Assembly: GCF_006345805.1 (NCBI RefSeq) | Contig: NW_021833668.1 | Location: forward strand, 1-56,621 | DNA length: 56,621 nt | From: Octopus sinensis | Lineage: Eukaryota | Direction of reading: 5' to 3' | In this document: piece after piece, positions 490 through 33,771 of the stretch | Numbering within the stretch: position 1 is the first letter of the stretch | Layout: the number at the start of each line of letters is the position of its first letter | The notes under the pieces: model-generated | Database searches by the model: none | Told to the model about the DNA's origin: nothing | Seen by the model: only the letters and a program-made list of their open reading frames with translations | Program-made: the position numbers and the translations under genes

Positions 490-568
490 CTCTGATGAAG
501 CGATAAGGTGTTACTCAGGCACTGAACTATAAGTGCAGCACATCACACGACAGAAACAGCTGTAAGAC
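490..568 (+). ncRNA. Decayed hammerhead-like motif
   Basis: CTGATGA at 492-498, GAAA at 553-556, palindromic stem III ACAGCTGT (556-563) then A. Stems I and II pair poorly. Confidence 0.3.
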
Positions 569-774
569 AATGAATGTCATAAGATAAGCGTTTATTCCTC
601 TGTCATCTCTTTTGCAGATCTGAAAAACCGAATAAAAGAAATGAAAAAGAAAATTAAAATATAATTAAAAAATAAAAATTTCTCAAGATCAAGATTGATC
701 GAGGATTAAACAAGAGCGAAAATTAATAAAAAGCACAACGGCAGTAAAAATTATACTTTCTAACTTTCTCACAA

Positions 775-924
775 GCACTAGAATAGCTTTGCGGTCCGCC
801 CGGCGGCACTTTTAAAGGGGCAGCACTTTTGGATTGCTATAGGCAATATTTGTTTTTTGTGGAGTCCAGCTGCGGCAAACGGAAGGGCTGCCGCGGGCGG
901 CACATACTTTAGCTACTCTAGTGC
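775..924. mobile_element. 150-bp MITE-like element with 14-bp terminal inverted repeats
   Basis: GCACTAGAATAGCT (775-788) versus AGCTACTCTAGTGC (911-924), one mismatch. GC-rich mini-hairpins inside both ends. No clear TSD. Confidence 0.55.
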
Positions 925-1865
925 GGTACAAGGCCAACAATTTTGAGAGGAAGGGTAGGCTGATGTCATCGATCCCAGTATGGGACTGATACTTTATTTT
1001 ATCGACCCCGAACGGATGAAAGGTAAAGTCGACCTTGTAGCCATTCGAACTCAGGAACGTAAAGCCGAAGGAATGAAAAGTAAAATCGGCCTCATGGGCA
1101 TTCGAACTAAGGAACTTAAAGCCGATTGAAATACCTATTTCTTTACTTCCAACAAAGGGCTACACTCAGAAGGGACAAACGAGGATAGATAAACGGATTA
1201 AGTCGATTATATCGACCCCAGTGCGTAACTGGTACTTATTTAATCGACCCCGAAAGGATGAAAGGCAAAGTCGACCTCGGCGGAATTTGAACTCAGAACG
1301 TAGCGGCAGACGAAATATCGCTAAGCATTTCGACCGGCGTGCTAACATTTCTGCCAGCTCGCCGCCAGTTCGCCGGTTGAAATACCGTTAAGCATTTTAC
1401 CTGAGCGCGCTAATAGTTGTACGGGTTGGCTACTTTACAATCTTTTCTGCTATAAGCACAAGGCCTGAGATTTGTAGGGGCAGCGGTGGAGTGGACGATT
1501 GCATCTACTCCAGCGCTCGACTCTTACTTATTCTGACCCTCAACGATAAAAGCTAAAGTCCACATAGACGGAATTTTAACTCAGAACGTAAAGACGCTAA
1601 GCAATTTGCCTTACATTCTAACAATTCTGCCAGCACGCCACCTTTCGGTTTCAAATTTTGGCACAAGGCCAGCAATTTTATGGAAGGGGCTAAGTTGATT
1701 AGATCACCCCCTACACACACACAGTACTTAACTGTTACTTGTGCTATCGTCTCCGCAAAGATGAAAAGCAAAGTCGACTTCGGCGGAATTTGAACTCAGA
1801 ACGTAAAGACATGAAATACCGCTAAACATTTTGCCCGGGGCGCTAACGATTCTGCCAGCTCCTCA
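925..1865 (-). mobile_element. Cluster of about four tRNA-derived SINE copies (octopus OK-like family); best copy 1131-1363
   Basis: Repeated ATCGACCCCGAAAGGATGAAAGGCAAAGTCGACCTCGGCGGAATTTGAACTCAGAACG, containing the reverse complement of a B-box (GTTCAAATTCC). Confidence 0.85.
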
Positions 1866-1920
1866 CCGCTTTTTGCCGCCTTAACTCTACTACTGCTGCT
1901 GCGGCTGTTGATAATGATAG

Positions 1921-1939
1921 TAATAAAATAAAAACAGCA

Positions 1940-1970
<31 letters not shown>

Positions 1971-1972
1971 TG

Positions 1973-2012
<40 letters not shown>

Positions 2013-2140
2013 TAATAATAATAATAATGGCCTCTCACTACTGCATCTCTCCGCAAGACACCGCAAAAAGCCAACACATTAGACTATTGCCTAATAAAAC
2101 CGCACCACTCCGTAATAACACACACAAGCACACACACACA

Positions 2141-2172
<32 letters not shown>

Positions 2173-2173
2173 A

Positions 2174-2213
<40 letters not shown>

Positions 2214-30785: not shown

Positions 30786-30913
30786 TATATATATATATAT
30801 AGTATAATATACATATATATATATATATATAAACAATATATATATCGAGAGAGAGAGAAGAGAGGAGAGAGAGATAACATATATATATATAGTATATATA
30901 TATATATATATAT

Positions 30914-31650
30914 AATGAAAATAAGCAACAAGGATATCCAGAGGTAATACAGTACGATCGTTTCACGCAACTCCATTTAATTGAACAATACAACCATTTT
31001 AAATGCAAAGCAATCCTCAGCTACACAAAGACATAGAATTTAATTGAATTAATACAGATGGGCACATTAGTATAATTTTACCTAAATTCTCAAAGAAGTT
31101 AAGGAGATAGACAACGAACATACTACATTCACTTCCACTTAGAAGCTACTAAGGTATCAGGAAGAAGGACATGCTACAGATTTTGCTTGTCACGGTTTTA
31201 TGGGGTCAGTTTTAATTTATGGACTAGATTTATCAAATCCTTGTATAGCTAAGGCTGAATGAACAGGGGGGAGTGTCTATTAGGGGTAGGGCTGAGGGAG
31301 ACGACAGATACCTTAGTAGCTTCTAAGAAGAAGTGAAGGCCGCATATTCTTTGTGTATCTCCTTAACTTCTTGGAGAGTTTTGGCAAAGTTACACTACTG
31401 AATCCATCAGTTCTAATTTAATAAAATTCTATATCTTTGTGCAGCTGATGTATATATAAATTGATGTAATCGCTGCATTGTTTAATTAAATGGAGTTGCA
31501 TGAAACGATCGTACTGCATTATCTCTGGATATCCTTGTCTATTTTGATTCTAATCACCTGATTTTCAAATTGTATGGATAATACCGTACTAAATTCTGTT
31601 GCTTTAACTTAAGTACCATATTCATCTGATTCTAAGTTTTTACTGAACTC
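30914..31650. mobile_element. Inverted-repeat element with hammerheads at 30948-31025 (minus, intact core) and 31440-31518 (plus, damaged) and a right extension
   Basis: Arms about 30914-31165 and 31305-31549; minus strand TGTAG-CTGAGGA-TTGC..GCGT-GAA-ACGATCGT-A-CTGTA. Confidence 0.8.
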
Positions 31651-32959
31651 ATATATATAAATTAGAAAATAAAACACCTTTTATCAATTCAATAATGAAA
31701 AATTAGATTATACCATCCGGAAAATTACATGCTATAGAAAGATTAAATATAAACTAAAACATATAACAATGATTAAGTAATGTGCAAAATAATAAATAAA
31801 ACGTATATATTTGGTAGAATAACGACACGTACTTCGTGGCTATATTTAAGAAATAATAATAGTAAAAATATAGTAGTAGTAGTAAAATTACTTCAATATA
31901 AATATAGCCACTCATCAGGTTAAAAATAACAATAATAAAATAATTAATTAGATAAATTAATAAATATACGTAAATAATCTTATAAAATACGAAATATTTT
32001 AACAAATATATTCTTGTTTAAAAAATGTGTGTGTGTGTGTGTGTGTGTACATATATATATATATATATATATACATACATACATTCATATATATAAGTTT
32101 GTGTGTGTTTATTCATCTATCTATTTATCCATCGATTGCTCTATCCATACACGCAAGATTAGGTATAGGGTTCACTTCACAGAATCCTTAAGCTGGCGAT
32201 AAAATGCTTTGTGGCATTTCTTTCCGCTCTCCATGTTCTGGAGCATCAAATCCCGTTGGCGACGGCATTGTCTTTTATCGCTTTGGGGTCGTTAAAACCA
32301 AGTTCCAGTTGTGCATTGGGGCGGACGCAATCGACTTTTTCTTCCGACCTTTTTCTGACCTTGAGCCAAATTTTGAAACCTTTCTTATTTTTGCCTCTGT
32401 ATTATCCTATCAATTTGTCCCTTTTTATGCAGTAGAAGTAGTAGCAGCAGCAGCAGGAGTAATTGTAGTAGTAGTAGCAGCAGCAGCAGCAGTGACACTA
32501 ATAGTACAGTAGTAGCAGCGGCGGCCGTCACAATAGGAGCCTCAGCAGCAGCAGCAGTAGTAGTGGTGGCAGTAGTAGTAGTGGTAGTGGTAGTAGTAGT
32601 AGTTATTCCAGTTTTGGTGTTGTTGCTGCTTTTGTTGTGGTCGTTGTTGCTGTTGCTACTGCTGTTGTTCTCTCTATTGATGTTGTTGTTGTTCCTATTT
32701 TTGCGATTTTTTTCTAGGATAGCAGACACAGAAACAGACTAACTATGGGTGATGGGGGTAGGGGTTAAACACAACAACAACAACAATAAAATACTTTATT
32801 AACGAAAGGTGACCGGAAGTTGAAAGTCATTGGGAAGTTCGGCCGCGTGAGTGATAAGATGTTACAAAAAGAACACTCTACAAAAAACAAAACAGCAGAC
32901 AAAAGATATATAAAAAAACAACAGATTTTTCAGATATATTCTTAAAGAAAGAAACAAAG

Positions 32960-33049
32960 AAAAAAAGAAAGAAGAAGAAGAAGAAGAAGAAGAAGAAGAA
33001 GAAGAAGAAGAAGAAGAAGAAGAAGAAGAAGAAGAAGAAGAAGAAGAAG

Positions 33050-33080
<31 letters not shown>
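32960..33080. repeat. Pure (GAA)n tract
   Basis: Direct reading. Confidence 0.95.
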
Positions 33081-33082
<2 letters not shown>

Positions 33083-33401
33083 ACAAGTGGATTGTGTGAG
33101 TTAATCCGTTAGAGTTTTTTTTCTTCTTAAAGTTCCTTTTTGAGAGAAGAGGAAAGAGGTTGTTTGTTGCCCGGATGTAGATCGTATTCAACAAGTTTTA
33201 GTTTTTAATTAGCCAAAAAAGGAAAAGAAAAAAAAACAATAAAACTATTGTGTTTTTCTTTATTTTGTTTTTCTGTTGTTCTTCGTTGTCTGTATGTCTG
33301 CATACATGCACACACGCACGCATATACACATGCATACAAATGCACACACACACACACACACACAAATATGTAATAATATATATACATATATATATACATA
33401 C

Positions 33402-33447
<46 letters not shown>

Positions 33448-33474
33448 GTATGTATATATAAGTATATATATTGT

Positions 33475-33665
33475 TTTACTTGTTTCAGTCATTTGACTGT
33501 GGCCATGCTGGGGCAGCGCCTCAAAGAGTTTTTCATAGTCGAAAGGATCGACGTATTTTTTTATAAGCCTTCTACTTACTCTATCGGTTCTTCTGCCGAA
33601 CCGCTAGGTTACGTGGACGTAAGCATACGAACATCGTTGTCAGGCGATGGTGGCAGACATACAAT
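33475..33665 (-). mobile_element. OR2-like SINE 3' part
   Basis: Tail block conserved. Confidence 0.75.
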
Positions 33666-33726
33666 AGAAATACAAAATGGCTGACGGTTAGTAAGGAGAG
33701 ACACAAATAAGAAAGAGGAAAACAAA

Positions 33727-33771
33727 GGACCACTGATGCGGTCACAGGAGTGTGACGAAAGAACTCTGGCC
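33727..33771 (+). ncRNA. Decayed minimal hammerhead
   Basis: GGACCA-CTGATGCG-GTCACA-ggag-TGTGAC-GAA-AGAACT-C-TGGCC. Confidence 0.55.

Follow-up and report, generated by a model that had tools for sequence, protein, structure and literature searches.

The flanking repeats of Penelope-like elements (PLEs) contain minimal hammerhead ribozymes, in many families per genome and mostly within truncated, solitary PLEs, with dual motifs placed on opposite strands 100-700 bp apart; these ribozymes are of type I, with a very short or palindromic helix III that implies action as dimers (Cervera and De la Pena 2014, PMC4209133). PLE insertions include strongly 5'-truncated copies abutted head-to-head in inverted orientation, with a tail at one end only, (TA)n or microsatellite targets, and a hammerhead close to the 3' end (Evgen'ev and Arkhipova 2005; Craig et al. 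2021, PMC8557442). For the Poseidon element PAc of Anolis carolinensis, both target strands are cut and extended in vitro and reverse transcription proceeds from two internal sites, the tail being the stretch between these starts (Frangieh et al. 2024, PMC11167929). Animal non-LTR retrozymes, which are non-coding, carry type I hammerheads and presumably depend on PLE proteins, form head-to-tail arrays and circular RNA molecules (Cervera and De la Pena 2020, PMC7229834; Li et al. 2026 preprint).

The window analysed here, 56,621 nucleotides of Octopus sinensis DNA (contig NW_021833668.1), shares the listed features of PLE hammerheads and canonical PLE insertions. It holds about 10 short (<0.75 kb), non-coding insertions, with single copies of 170-450 nt within pairs, which are in our judgement probably dead-on-arrival products of PLE machinery: each would be a short, 5'-truncated copy of the module found at the 3' end of a PLE-type RNA. 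The first-pass annotation had suggested that their fold-back architecture might be undescribed; head-to-head pairs beside (TA)n are, however, the published PLE insertion signature and not a new kind of element (PMC4209133, PMC8557442, PMC11167929).

Hammerhead motifs

Between positions 486 and 33771 there are about 15 hammerhead-like motifs, in at least four families. Five qualify formally as intact type I hammerheads and six are their decayed homologues; a further two have an unusual variant core in common, another combines both core boxes with weak helices, and one or two are chance. Of the first-pass sites, those at 20427-20484 and 22452, the latter an isolated CTGATGA, and probably that at 486 are best read as chance. 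The first-pass "several unrelated families" overstates the diversity of the inverted pairs, three of which belong to one family, Fam1.

Four perfect cores, at 5841-5887(+), 15809-15860(-), 26021-26097(-) and 26531-26608(+), satisfied a stringent type I descriptor (CTGANGA, helix II with a minimum of 3 bp, GAA, self-paired helix III (A..T), H, helix I likewise with a minimum of 3 bp), against a mean of 0.09 in Markov shuffles. The proposed type I layout with self-complementary helix III is supported. Under a looser test (CTGANGA, 6-75 nt, GAA, perfect palindrome of at least 6 nt, H) four sites were found against 0.13 expected, the newly gained ones being 30947-31026(-) and 486-570(+). The decayed motifs at 31439-31519(+), 23014-23101(-) and 23158-23245(+), and the three of the "ACGT" family, came from homology and not from the descriptor. 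The string CTGATGA alone is not enriched (15 observed, 10.2 expected), and single-sequence folding z-scores of the motifs are mostly unremarkable (-1.2 to +0.8). The Rfam hammerhead models matched no candidate in the window even at E<=10 in 100-nt windows; this result carries little weight, because a control hammerhead adjoining an intact PLE ORF scores only 12.7 bits and is also missed.

Families and architecture of the insertions

All five long inverted repeats noted previously were found, at 5456-5697, 15661-16119, 22950-23306, 25985-26644 and 30911-31552, and the one-sided extension noted for three of them is confirmed for the Fam1 pairs, where it measures 81-86 nt. Fam1, the largest family, has a core ending GAAACGATCGTAC and occurs as three inverted pairs in head-to-head arrangement (22.9, 26.0 and 31.0 kb):

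25985..26730, both strands: young pair, arms 98% alike; inverted repeat 25985-26644
25985, minus-sense: end of the left copy, against (TA)n
26645-26730, plus-sense: 86-nt extension of the right copy
26015-26103(-) and 26525-26614(+): intact hammerheads, TTTTAG-CTGATGA-58/59 nt helix II-GAA-ACGATCGT-A-CTAAAA
26196-26432: unique sequence at the centre of the pair
30911..31633, both strands: old pair, arms 80% alike; inverted repeat 30911-31552
30947-31026(-): intact hammerhead, core CTGAGGA, of the left copy, which ends at 30911 at (TA)n
31439-31519(+): hammerhead of the right copy, broken to CTGATGT with a TA expansion
31553-31633: 81-nt extension of the right copy
22896..23306, both strands: old pair, arms 79% alike; inverted repeat 22950-23306; both hammerheads decayed
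23014-23101(-): decayed hammerhead, core GAGAGGA
23158-23245(+): decayed hammerhead, GAA changed to GTA, and ACGGTCGT
22896-22980: 85-nt extension on the left side, passing into a microsatellite

All three pairs have outward-facing ribozymes, one arm stopping about 37 nt past the cleavage site, usually at (TA)n, and the other carrying the extra 81-86 nt. Because every pair has one short and one longer end, with an identical boundary position, the edge of the inverted repeat is not the edge of the element. Alignment of the 26.0 and 31.0 kb subfamilies is confined to the hammerhead's 3' half and the tail (about 55 nt at 74%), their upstream sequences being unrelated; constraint therefore lies on that module. 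Within both old pairs the hammerhead has diverged at the same pace as the remaining arm sequence (77% versus 82% at 31.0 kb, 82% versus 85% at 22.9 kb). In the proposed covariation check, helix I has 93% of cells paired across five distinct arms, in effect a single subfamily split (18-52% in slid controls), and in three of its six pairs both partners change from one subfamily to the other. At 49-59 nt, against the 6-8 bp of PLE minimal hammerheads (PMC4209133), helix II is unusually long, and it closes by G.U or U.U instead of the conserved G10.1-C11.1, so that the catalytic competence of these hammerheads is uncertain.

The remaining families are represented as follows:

15661..16119, both strands: Fam2 head-to-head pair, arms 15661-15821 and 15959-16119, 95-96% alike
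15803-15866(-): complete hammerhead of the longer Fam2 copy, CTGATGA, G10.1-C11.1, helix III ATCAC-TG-GTGAT
9216..9400(+): Fam3 ("ACGT") copy, 3' end passing into (TC)n/(TA)n
9264-9304(+): its hammerhead relic, CTGTAGA-A-GAGC GTAG GCTC-GAA-ACGT-A, A6 mutated
18850..18990(-): Fam3 copy, 3' end adjoining (TA)n
18929-18969(-): its hammerhead relic, CTGGCGA-A-GAGC..GCTG-GAA-ACGT-A
29608..29766(-): Fam3 copy, 65% alike to that at 9.2 kb
29701-29740(-): its hammerhead, first core intact, CTGAAGA-A-GAGC TTT GCTC-GAA; helix III AGGT, palindrome lost
6212..6262(-): Fam3 fragment, just the last ~50 nt of the element, ending at (TA)n
5774..6057(+): single Fam4 copy, flanked by (TA)n tracts on both sides
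5835-5893(+): Fam4 hammerhead, CTGAAGA-GGGA..TCCC-GAA-ATTGATTCAAT-A; helix I just 3 bp

The shorter Fam2 copy begins 7 nt ahead of the cleavage site, from which the 3' end lies about 148 nt away, and the left end of the pair adjoins (TA)n. Fam3 hammerheads have an additional nucleotide between A9 and G10.1 together with G10.1-C11.1, both typical of PLE minimal hammerheads (PMC4209133), and the fragment at 6212..6262, with its extreme 5' truncation and common 3' end, bears the signature of retro-type insertion. No Fam4 paralogue occurs in the window.

Of 14 element termini, 6 are within 2 nt of a (TA) run five or more units long, while 7.5% of window positions fall within 5 nt of one (p ~3e-4, binomial calculated by hand); element termini are enriched at (TA)n. 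Copies have common 3' and variable 5' ends, arm lengths vary among insertions of a family while outer ends are fixed, and no transposon-type terminal repeats or target duplications defining the elements were seen; the earlier reading of these as retro-type and not DNA-transposon-type elements is supported. Every multi-copy arrangement is inverted. A metagenome scan for wider copies returned chance matches only.

PLE coding sequences and autonomous reference loci

A tblastn search of the window with 60 PLE proteins matched only 44.6-45.3 kb, within the sole PLE coding remnant:

44643..45540(+): 5'-truncated remnant of a canonical EN+ PLE, with C-terminal GIY-YIG domain

The remnant has one in-frame stop (45162) and an ORF end at 45302, followed by a 3' UTR of about 240 nt in which no canonical hammerhead was found. 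The GIY-YIG piece near 44.9 kb, placed at 44922 at first pass, forms the C-terminal end of a canonical PLE protein (RT plus GIY-YIG endonuclease). No PLE ORF is attached to a hammerhead-bearing element in the window, in which respect its ribozymes differ from the PLE minimal hammerheads (PMC4209133), and no autonomous partner with these ribozymes was found.

The Penelope-like affiliation first proposed is supported by the presence of this remnant and by locus L012, a full-length autonomous PLE pair of the same layout, with 3573-nt head-to-head arms each bearing an RT+GIY-YIG ORF. The L012 hammerheads face outward 78 nt from the end, (TA)n lies on both sides, and a 23-nt tail is present at one end only; this locus reproduces the features of canonical PLE insertions. 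The window copies differ from the latter (PMC8557442) in being very short and non-coding, in showing no visible partial-tandem flanking repeat (pLTR), and in the 81-86 nt Fam1 extension, longer than the published 30-40 bp tail. They share with PAc (PMC11167929) an AT-rich target and discrete alternative 3' termini downstream of the hammerhead, which lie at +37-40 and +120-125 nt from the cleavage site here and at about +85-92 nt in PAc.

Origin of the elements

By analogy with PAc, whose cutting and extension of both strands accounts for inverted pairs with one tailed end, insertion may be pictured as follows. The copied module would consist of a minimal type I hammerhead and a tail of 40-150 nt. 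A dimeric complex of RT/endonuclease protein and RNA would cleave the two strands of a target that is AT-rich or (TA)n, each freed 3'-OH would prime reverse transcription from one of two or three discrete internal starts downstream of the hammerhead, and the two cDNAs would converge, abort early and be joined. The product would be a head-to-head inverted pair whose ribozymes face outward, with unique sequence at its centre and a "tail" on just one side. Active source copies would keep the hammerhead, which there probably acts on multimeric transcripts as a dimer via its palindromic helix III; in inserted copies it would be free to decay. The source copies could be either autonomous PLEs or non-coding derivatives dependent on borrowed PLE proteins.

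In a sharper form of the second option, the insertions would belong to dedicated families that are non-coding and non-autonomous, either SINE-like or short derivatives of PLEs, each just a hammerhead plus an RT-recognition tail mobilized in trans by autonomous PLEs, and would not be truncated copies of coding PLEs. We regard this as possible but less likely than not; it refines the explanation by PLE machinery and does not contradict it. It would suit some 10 insertions that are all below 0.75 kb and lack any PLE coding remnant, the crowding of at least four families into 34 kb where the lone PLE ORF fragment comes from a lineage that lacks these hammerheads, the module shared by otherwise unrelated Fam1 subfamilies, and a 2026 preprint that derives animal non-LTR retrozymes from PLE flanking repeats (10.64898/2026.07.22.740005). 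On the other hand, heavy 5' truncation is a known trait of PLE insertions, the majority of genomic minimal hammerheads are ascribed to truncated PLEs (PMC4209133, PMC8557442), and no full-length unit with defined 5' ends or promoter was seen. The 320 nt of non-coding upstream sequence here excludes nothing, because at locus L011 the hammerhead lies about 630 nt downstream of the ORF stop.

The label "retrozyme-like" given at first pass fares poorly. Non-LTR retrozymes, as head-to-tail monomers of 170-400 nt that each contain a hammerhead and spread via circular RNAs, are a very improbable identity for the elements here, even though these have type I hammerheads with short palindromic helix III that would cleave as dimers and are non-coding with a comparable unit size (PMC7229834): a head-to-tail tandem of hammerhead units is absent from the whole window, which has inverted pairs or truncated copies on their own; either transcript strand of a pair has one sense ribozyme, and intramolecular dimers are therefore impossible; and post-cleavage-site sequence does not recur upstream of the ribozyme, which means that the units are no circular permutations.

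Still harder to sustain, and very unlikely, is the reading of these elements as MITEs or fold-back DNA transposons with hammerhead-like strings by coincidence. Automated tools would likely annotate them so, as they are short and non-coding with long inverted repeats and a short unique centre, and the 5456-5697 repeat may truly be of this kind. However, Fam1 homology across independent insertions runs past the inverted repeat on one side only, target duplications were not seen, arm lengths differ between fixed outer ends, single-arm and 3'-fragment copies occur, and the layout is identical in the coding pair L012. Least probable of all is that the resemblance is chance in AT-rich, repeat-rich DNA and that no motif is or was a ribozyme, for which the missing Rfam matches, plain folding scores, unenriched CTGATGA and discarded early candidates might speak, but against which stand full motifs 30- to 40-fold above shuffles, their conservation between otherwise diverged subfamilies, compensated helix I changes, and the Rfam models' failure on the PLE-linked control.

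Variant-core and doubtful motifs

Four further features stand apart from these families:

486..570(+): motif with both core boxes; helix III an 8-nt palindrome (ACAGCTGT), helix I just 2 bp, helix II unclosed
5456..5697, both strands: perfect inverted repeat, 76-nt arms 100% complementary and 90 nt apart, AATT ends on both sides
5536-5585(-): hammerhead-like three-way junction at the centre of this repeat, GUGAAC-CG replacing CUGANGA
33727..33771(+): single hammerhead-like motif, CTGATG-CG-GTCAC..GTGAC-GAA-AGAACT-C

The 486-570 motif is a decayed relic or, probably, chance. The membership of the 5456..5697 repeat is uncertain, and the motif at 33727-33771, which has no paralogue, is doubtful. 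In this last motif, as at 5536-5585(-), "CG" replaces A9, a departure from the PLE minimal hammerheads (PMC4209133) that the two have in common.

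Hammerhead motifs and their chance level

A self-written, strict descriptor of the type I hammerhead with a perfect core detected four motifs in the window, against 0.09 in Markov shuffles of the same DNA, and a looser one (CTGANGA, 6-75 nt, GAA, a perfect palindrome, then H) returned four sites where 0.13 were expected, those new to it being 30947-31026 on the minus strand and 486-570 on the plus strand. The box CTGATGA by itself is not enriched (15 occurrences versus 10.2 expected), and the signal therefore resides in the full motif. Decayed copies missed by the descriptor were recovered by homology searches within the window, and the tally stands at about 15 hammerhead-like sites.

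Hammerhead-like sites in the window
5835-5893, 15803-15866, 26015-26103, 26525-26614, 30947-31026: formally intact hammerheads (five)
23014-23101, 23158-23245, 31439-31519, 9264-9304, 18929-18969, 29701-29740: decayed homologues (six)
486-570: both core boxes present, poor helices (one)
5536-5585 (minus strand), 33727-33771 (plus strand): a common variant core (two)

The excess over shuffled sequence largely bears out the dense hammerhead system described in the first-pass annotation. One or two further sites, namely 20427-20484 and an isolated CTGATGA at 22452, are best ascribed to chance. The segment 22388-22510 was rejected as a hammerhead, being an imperfect 123-nt hairpin (core arms of 34 nt, 91% complementary) in which CTGATGA is confined to the loop and a GAAA partner is missing. 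When metagenomes were scanned for GAAACGATCGTAC, 15-35 nt and then TGTTGCTT, seven loci came up, all attributable to chance because none has a CTGANGA box upstream.

No hammerhead was found with Rfam models (RF00163, RF00008 and related), either in the whole window at the gathering score and at E<=10 or, at E<=10, in four small windows of about 100-720 nt that covered the strongest candidates. This result carries little weight, since a control hammerhead located 85 nt downstream of an intact ORF of a Penelope-like element (PLE) in a fetched locus fails as well, its 12.7 bits being far short of the 48.5 required. The whole-window run in E-value mode produced hundreds of matches to mir-297, mir-466, mir-3149 and mir-1277, down to E = 5e-9; these are low-complexity artefacts on (TG/TA)n microsatellites, false positives that swamped the hammerhead run and that would raise miRNA counts in automated annotation.

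Families and predicted ribozyme structure

Several unrelated families had been proposed for these elements. There is indeed more than one, but not all are unrelated, as three of the inverted pairs belong to a single family.

Hammerhead families in the window
22896-23306, 25985-26730, 30911-31633: Fam1, three inverted pairs (23k, 26k and 31k; L and R, left and right copy)
15661-16119: Fam2, one pair, at 15.7-16.1 kb
9216-9400, 18850-18990, 29608-29766: Fam3, three copies, with a 3' fragment of about 50 nt at 6212-6262
5774-6057: Fam4, one copy

Within Fam1, defined by the core GAA-ACGATCGT-A, the 23k pair resembles the 31k pair over about 160 nt (74%), while what the 26k pair has in common with both is limited to the 3' half of the ribozyme plus the tail that follows it, some 55 nt with 74% identity. 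The motif reconstructed for Fam3, CTGANGA-A-GAGC/GCTC-GAA-ACGT-A, resembles the minimal hammerheads of PLEs in its extra nucleotide after A9 and its G10.1-C11.1 pair (PMC4209133). The same closing pair of helix II is present in Fam2, in Fam4 and in the control locus L012, which encodes full-length PLE proteins; Fam1 deviates from the consensus here, with G.U in 26k, U.U in 31k and 23k, and no G-C. The exact CUGANGA box, between helices I and II, occurs at 5841, 15854, 26091, 26531, 31020 (as CTGAGGA) and 492; 23kL, 31kR and all but one of the three Fam3 copies have mutations in it. The second core (GAA, A15.1...U16.1 and a cleavable H17) takes the forms GAA-ACGATCGT-A, GAA-ATCACTGGTGAT-C, GAA-ATTGATTCAAT-A and GAA-ACGT-A, and 23kR carries GTA where GAA is expected.

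Helix II of Fam1 folds, in every arm, as a long imperfect hairpin of 50-60 nt that is not alignable across subfamilies. MAFFT placed the first core box of the 26k subfamily out of register with that of the 31k subfamily, and helices I and III were therefore counted on an alignment free of helix II. Among the five distinct arms 93% of helix I cells are paired, and control structures slid by 1-3 columns have only 18-52% of cells paired. In half of the six helix I pairs both partners differ from the 26k to the 31k/23k lineages, the paired changes being T-A to C-G, T-A to G-C and T-A to A-T/G-U. This pattern supports a hammerhead structure, short of proof with five sequences, as the observed score is attained by 24 of 500 shuffles. 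Single-sequence folding energies of the candidates are mostly unremarkable, as expected of predicted ribozymes that would need dimerisation. A frame starting with ATG (MEL.ET..) begins 24 nt before the Fam1 cleavage site and recalls the ORF start of PAc, the Poseidon PLE of Anolis carolinensis; it was dismissed as coding sequence, being broken within 23-26 codons and shifted between Fam1 copies.

Anatomy, ends and age of the insertions

The paired copies lie head-to-head with their ribozymes directed outward on opposite strands, which puts the 3' ends on the outside and the junction of two 5'-truncated copies in the middle. All four pairs conform to this plan with arms of differing length, and the solitary copies of Fam3 have a common 3' end and different 5' ends, down to the fragment of about 50 nt. 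As is characteristic of PLE insertions, the hammerhead in Fam1 to Fam4 alike lies close to the 3' end and precedes a short tail: the distance from the predicted cleavage site to the 3' end is 37-40 or about 120-125 nt in Fam1, about 148 nt in Fam2, about 100 nt in Fam3 and about 170 nt in Fam4. In all three Fam1 pairs, one side, and one alone, shows family homology for a further 81-86 nt outside the inverted repeat, up to near ...AACTTAAGTACCATATTCAACTGAATCT, and the boundary between short and long end has a constant position; the other arm stops about 37-40 nt past the cleavage site, directly at (TA)n in two of the three. The edge of the inverted repeat thus differs from the edge of the element. 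We considered whether the extension might be an independent repeat, but in the window it is confined to the three Fam1 loci. No one-sided extension was seen in the Fam2 pair.

Runs of at least five TA units lie within 2 nt of 6 of the 14 termini, whereas 7.5% of window positions lie within 5 nt of such a run (binomial p ~3e-4), and target-site duplications are not visible at 25985/26644, 30911/31552 or 15661/16119. Together, the fixed 3' ends with variable 5' ends, the (TA)n and the lack of visible duplications bear the signature of target-primed reverse transcription rather than cut-and-paste transposition. The pairs do resemble MITEs, and automated pipelines would tend to call them DNA elements or "unknown". 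Interpretation as MITEs or fold-back DNA transposons, whose terminal inverted repeats should coincide with the element ends inside a target-site duplication, is nevertheless contradicted at the pair edges by the absence of visible duplications and by the passage of Fam1 homology beyond the inverted repeat on one side. The combination of outward hammerheads, fixed 3' ends and a one-sided tail allows correct assignment to the Penelope-like class, and this raises the estimate of the part played by PLE activity in shaping this genome.

Since both arms were identical at insertion, arm identity ranks the pairs by age: 98% in 26k, 95-96% in the Fam2 pair at 15.8 kb, 80% in 31k and 79% in 23k. In the two old pairs the ribozyme is no better conserved than the remainder of the arm (77% versus 82% identity in 31k, 82% versus 85% in 23k), which argues that inserted copies are not under selection; constraint, judged from these comparisons, is visible only between families, i.e., on the source copies.

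Relationship to Penelope-like elements

One coding remnant of a PLE is found in the window.

44643-45540 (plus strand): 5'-truncated canonical PLE with C-terminal GIY-YIG, (TA)n upstream and (AAT)n downstream

It has an in-frame stop at 45162-45164 and a 3' UTR of about 240 nt. A search with its ORF, 44922-45302, gave 376 homologues at E<1e-10; the long proteins among them, of about 750 aa, match it at their extreme C-terminus and bear Pfam RVT_1 and GIY-YIG; by homology, then, the ORF is assigned to the canonical EN+ PLE architecture, and the GIY-YIG remnant recognized earlier at 44922 is confirmed as the C-terminus of such a protein. The only close DNA relative found for the window is a short Logan contig, SRR11869391, which is 71% identical over 588 nt to this remnant (window 44643-45540; L001 903-1431). 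The 3' UTR of the remnant contains no canonical hammerhead. When 60 full-length PLE proteins were compared with the window by tblastn, the sole match was 44643-45299 and none fell in or beside the hammerhead elements, which are therefore fragments or non-autonomous derivatives rather than autonomous PLEs. Direct repeats of hammerhead modules, as in partial-tandem flanking repeats (pLTRs), are absent in every element.

Fetched loci with full-length PLE proteins provide a comparison. In one (L011), a hammerhead of the form CTGAAGA...GAA-AGCGCT-T with a 6-bp helix I lies about 630 nt past the stop codon; another is itself paired.

L012 5066-12382 (from ENA ERZ25069866, 1.77-Mb contig): full-length autonomous PLE pair, head-to-head

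The arms of L012, 3573 nt each, are 100% identical and separated by a spacer of 171 nt; in each, an ORF for RT+GIY-YIG is accompanied by a minimal hammerhead, CTGACGA-GCTCAGC-GAA-ACGCGT-T, which points outward and lies 78 nt short of the arm end. (TA)n occurs on both flanks, a 23-nt tail at the left end only, and the last 60 nt or so plus the tail are repeated at the centre. This locus is the full-size counterpart of the pairs in the window and, along with their anatomy and (TA)n ends, it supports the PLE origin suggested in the first-pass annotation, which was right in outline. The accompanying term "retrozyme" is not supported: head-to-tail hammerhead monomers (about 170-400 nt) were not found in the window, where all arrangements are inverted or single, and a circular or tandem unit would need the post-cleavage sequence to be repeated upstream, which it is not.

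Minimal type I hammerheads are known from PLE flanking repeats, with thousands of copies and many families per metazoan genome (PMC4209133). Most such motifs are solitary and have been ascribed to truncated PLEs (Cervera and De la Pena, PMC4209133), and "dual min-HHRs" on opposite strands at about 100-700 bp have been reported (PMC4209133). Inverted 5'-truncated PLE copies, (TA)n targets and a tail of 30-40 bp, often at one end, have also been described (Craig et al., PMC8557442); the Fam1 extension is longer than this tail. Opposite-strand pairs, inverted truncated copies and one-sided tails, an architecture that had been thought possibly undescribed, are thus already published (PMC4209133, PMC8557442), and our finding brings new families but no new principle. 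We found no paper on Fam1 to Fam4 as such. In Octopus vulgaris PLEs are an annotated, recently active order of transposable elements (PMC13282606), and for the giant squid genome a count of Rfam-type hammerhead_1 matches has been published (PMC6962438).

Proposed mechanism and source copies

The protein of a lizard PLE, studied in vitro, cleaves both strands of DNA at AT-rich positions and extends each of the two (Frangieh et al., PMC11167929), using two internal RT start sites downstream of the hammerhead, with the tail corresponding to the stretch between them (PMC11167929). While the anatomy of the present insertions is observed, the steps leading to it can be inferred by analogy with that system. 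PLE-type RNAs would be transcribed from source copies, and a PLE protein, probably dimeric, would cleave (TA)n or AT-rich DNA on the two strands. Each 3'-OH would then prime cDNA at one or other of the discrete start sites, in Fam1 at about +38 nt and +122 nt from the cleavage site, and both cDNAs would stop after 170-450 nt and be joined, giving an inverted pair with one end tailed. With short and long termini at constant positions, the Fam1 pairs offer tidy natural examples of this model of two start sites and priming on both strands. Given its palindromic helix III, the ribozyme would need two sense copies to come together in order to work, whether within a tandem source transcript or from separate RNA molecules; as an inverted pair has one sense copy per strand, the pairs would be end products and not replicating units.

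The source copies may be autonomous PLEs or else dedicated non-coding derivatives. The presence in the window of about ten short non-coding hammerhead insertions with no linked ORF would fit the latter, but truncation of PLEs is notoriously severe and could also leave short copies lacking an ORF. A stronger version, which we consider improbable, posits very abundant, dedicated non-coding parasites of PLEs, at roughly one hammerhead insertion per 3 kb, whose ribozymes depart from the published consensus of minimal hammerheads in two ways: in Fam1, by the 50-60 nt helix II with its non-canonical closing pair and by an alternative RT start-site "tail" of 81-86 nt; and elsewhere, by a core with "CG" for A9 and a 3-8 pair swapped between two instances. 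Variants of both kinds, if active, would widen the known sequence space of natural hammerheads and would also be a compact natural system in which to study how PLE reverse transcriptases prime on two strands.

Variant cores

In the two variant-core motifs CUGANGA is replaced by GUGAAC-CG (5536) and CUGAUG-CG (33727), both having "CG" for A9; the 3-8 core pair is swapped between them (C3-G8 to G3-C8) and a change in helix II is compensated. These may represent a true hammerhead variant or else a coincidence. A candidate at 38.7 kb was discarded as a homologue of the 33.7 kb motif, as real homology is absent. The first motif lies in a further inverted repeat.

5456-5697: inverted repeat, arms of 76 nt, 100% complementary, AATT at both ends, 90-nt centre

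On the minus strand the fold of its centre (z = -3.0) is a three-way junction resembling a hammerhead, with G3...C8 in the core and "CG" for A9. The whole may be a very young pair of the PLE type, or alternatively a true MITE.

Other repeats in the window

The window as a whole is AT-rich eukaryotic DNA laden with microsatellites, in which LINE RT fragments, a Tc1/mariner remnant and SINE-like repeats were recognized.

Other repeats
16725-17030 (plus), 30083-30544 (minus), 49962-50949 (plus), 52320-53138 (minus): Tc1/mariner HTH_Tnp_Tc3_2 remnant and LINE reverse-transcriptase fragments
about 4770, 13800, 14790, 33490, 42790, 51650, 55840: SINE-like unit

A PHD-type zinc finger follows one of the LINE fragments. 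The LINE ORF at 30083-30544 has no close or cephalopod-labelled relative, its best match being 78% identical on a 690-nt contig, and its nearest protein relatives bear crustacean labels or no label. Searches through this ORF and the GIY-YIG ORF added no copies of Fam1 to Fam4. No other interspersed repeat is as frequent in the window as the SINE-like unit, which starts ...GTCATTTGACTG(C/T)GGCCATGCTGG... and usually precedes a microsatellite. Two inverted repeats stand apart from the families described here. That at 12368-12818, with arms of about 197 nt that are 90% complementary, a (TA/TG)n centre and no hammerhead box, may consist of two insertions facing each other within one microsatellite. 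The other, of 180 nt and 84% complementary, has its arms (1123-1302 and 4453-4632) 3.15 kb apart, with long (CA)n, (GAT)n and (TG)n tracts between them.
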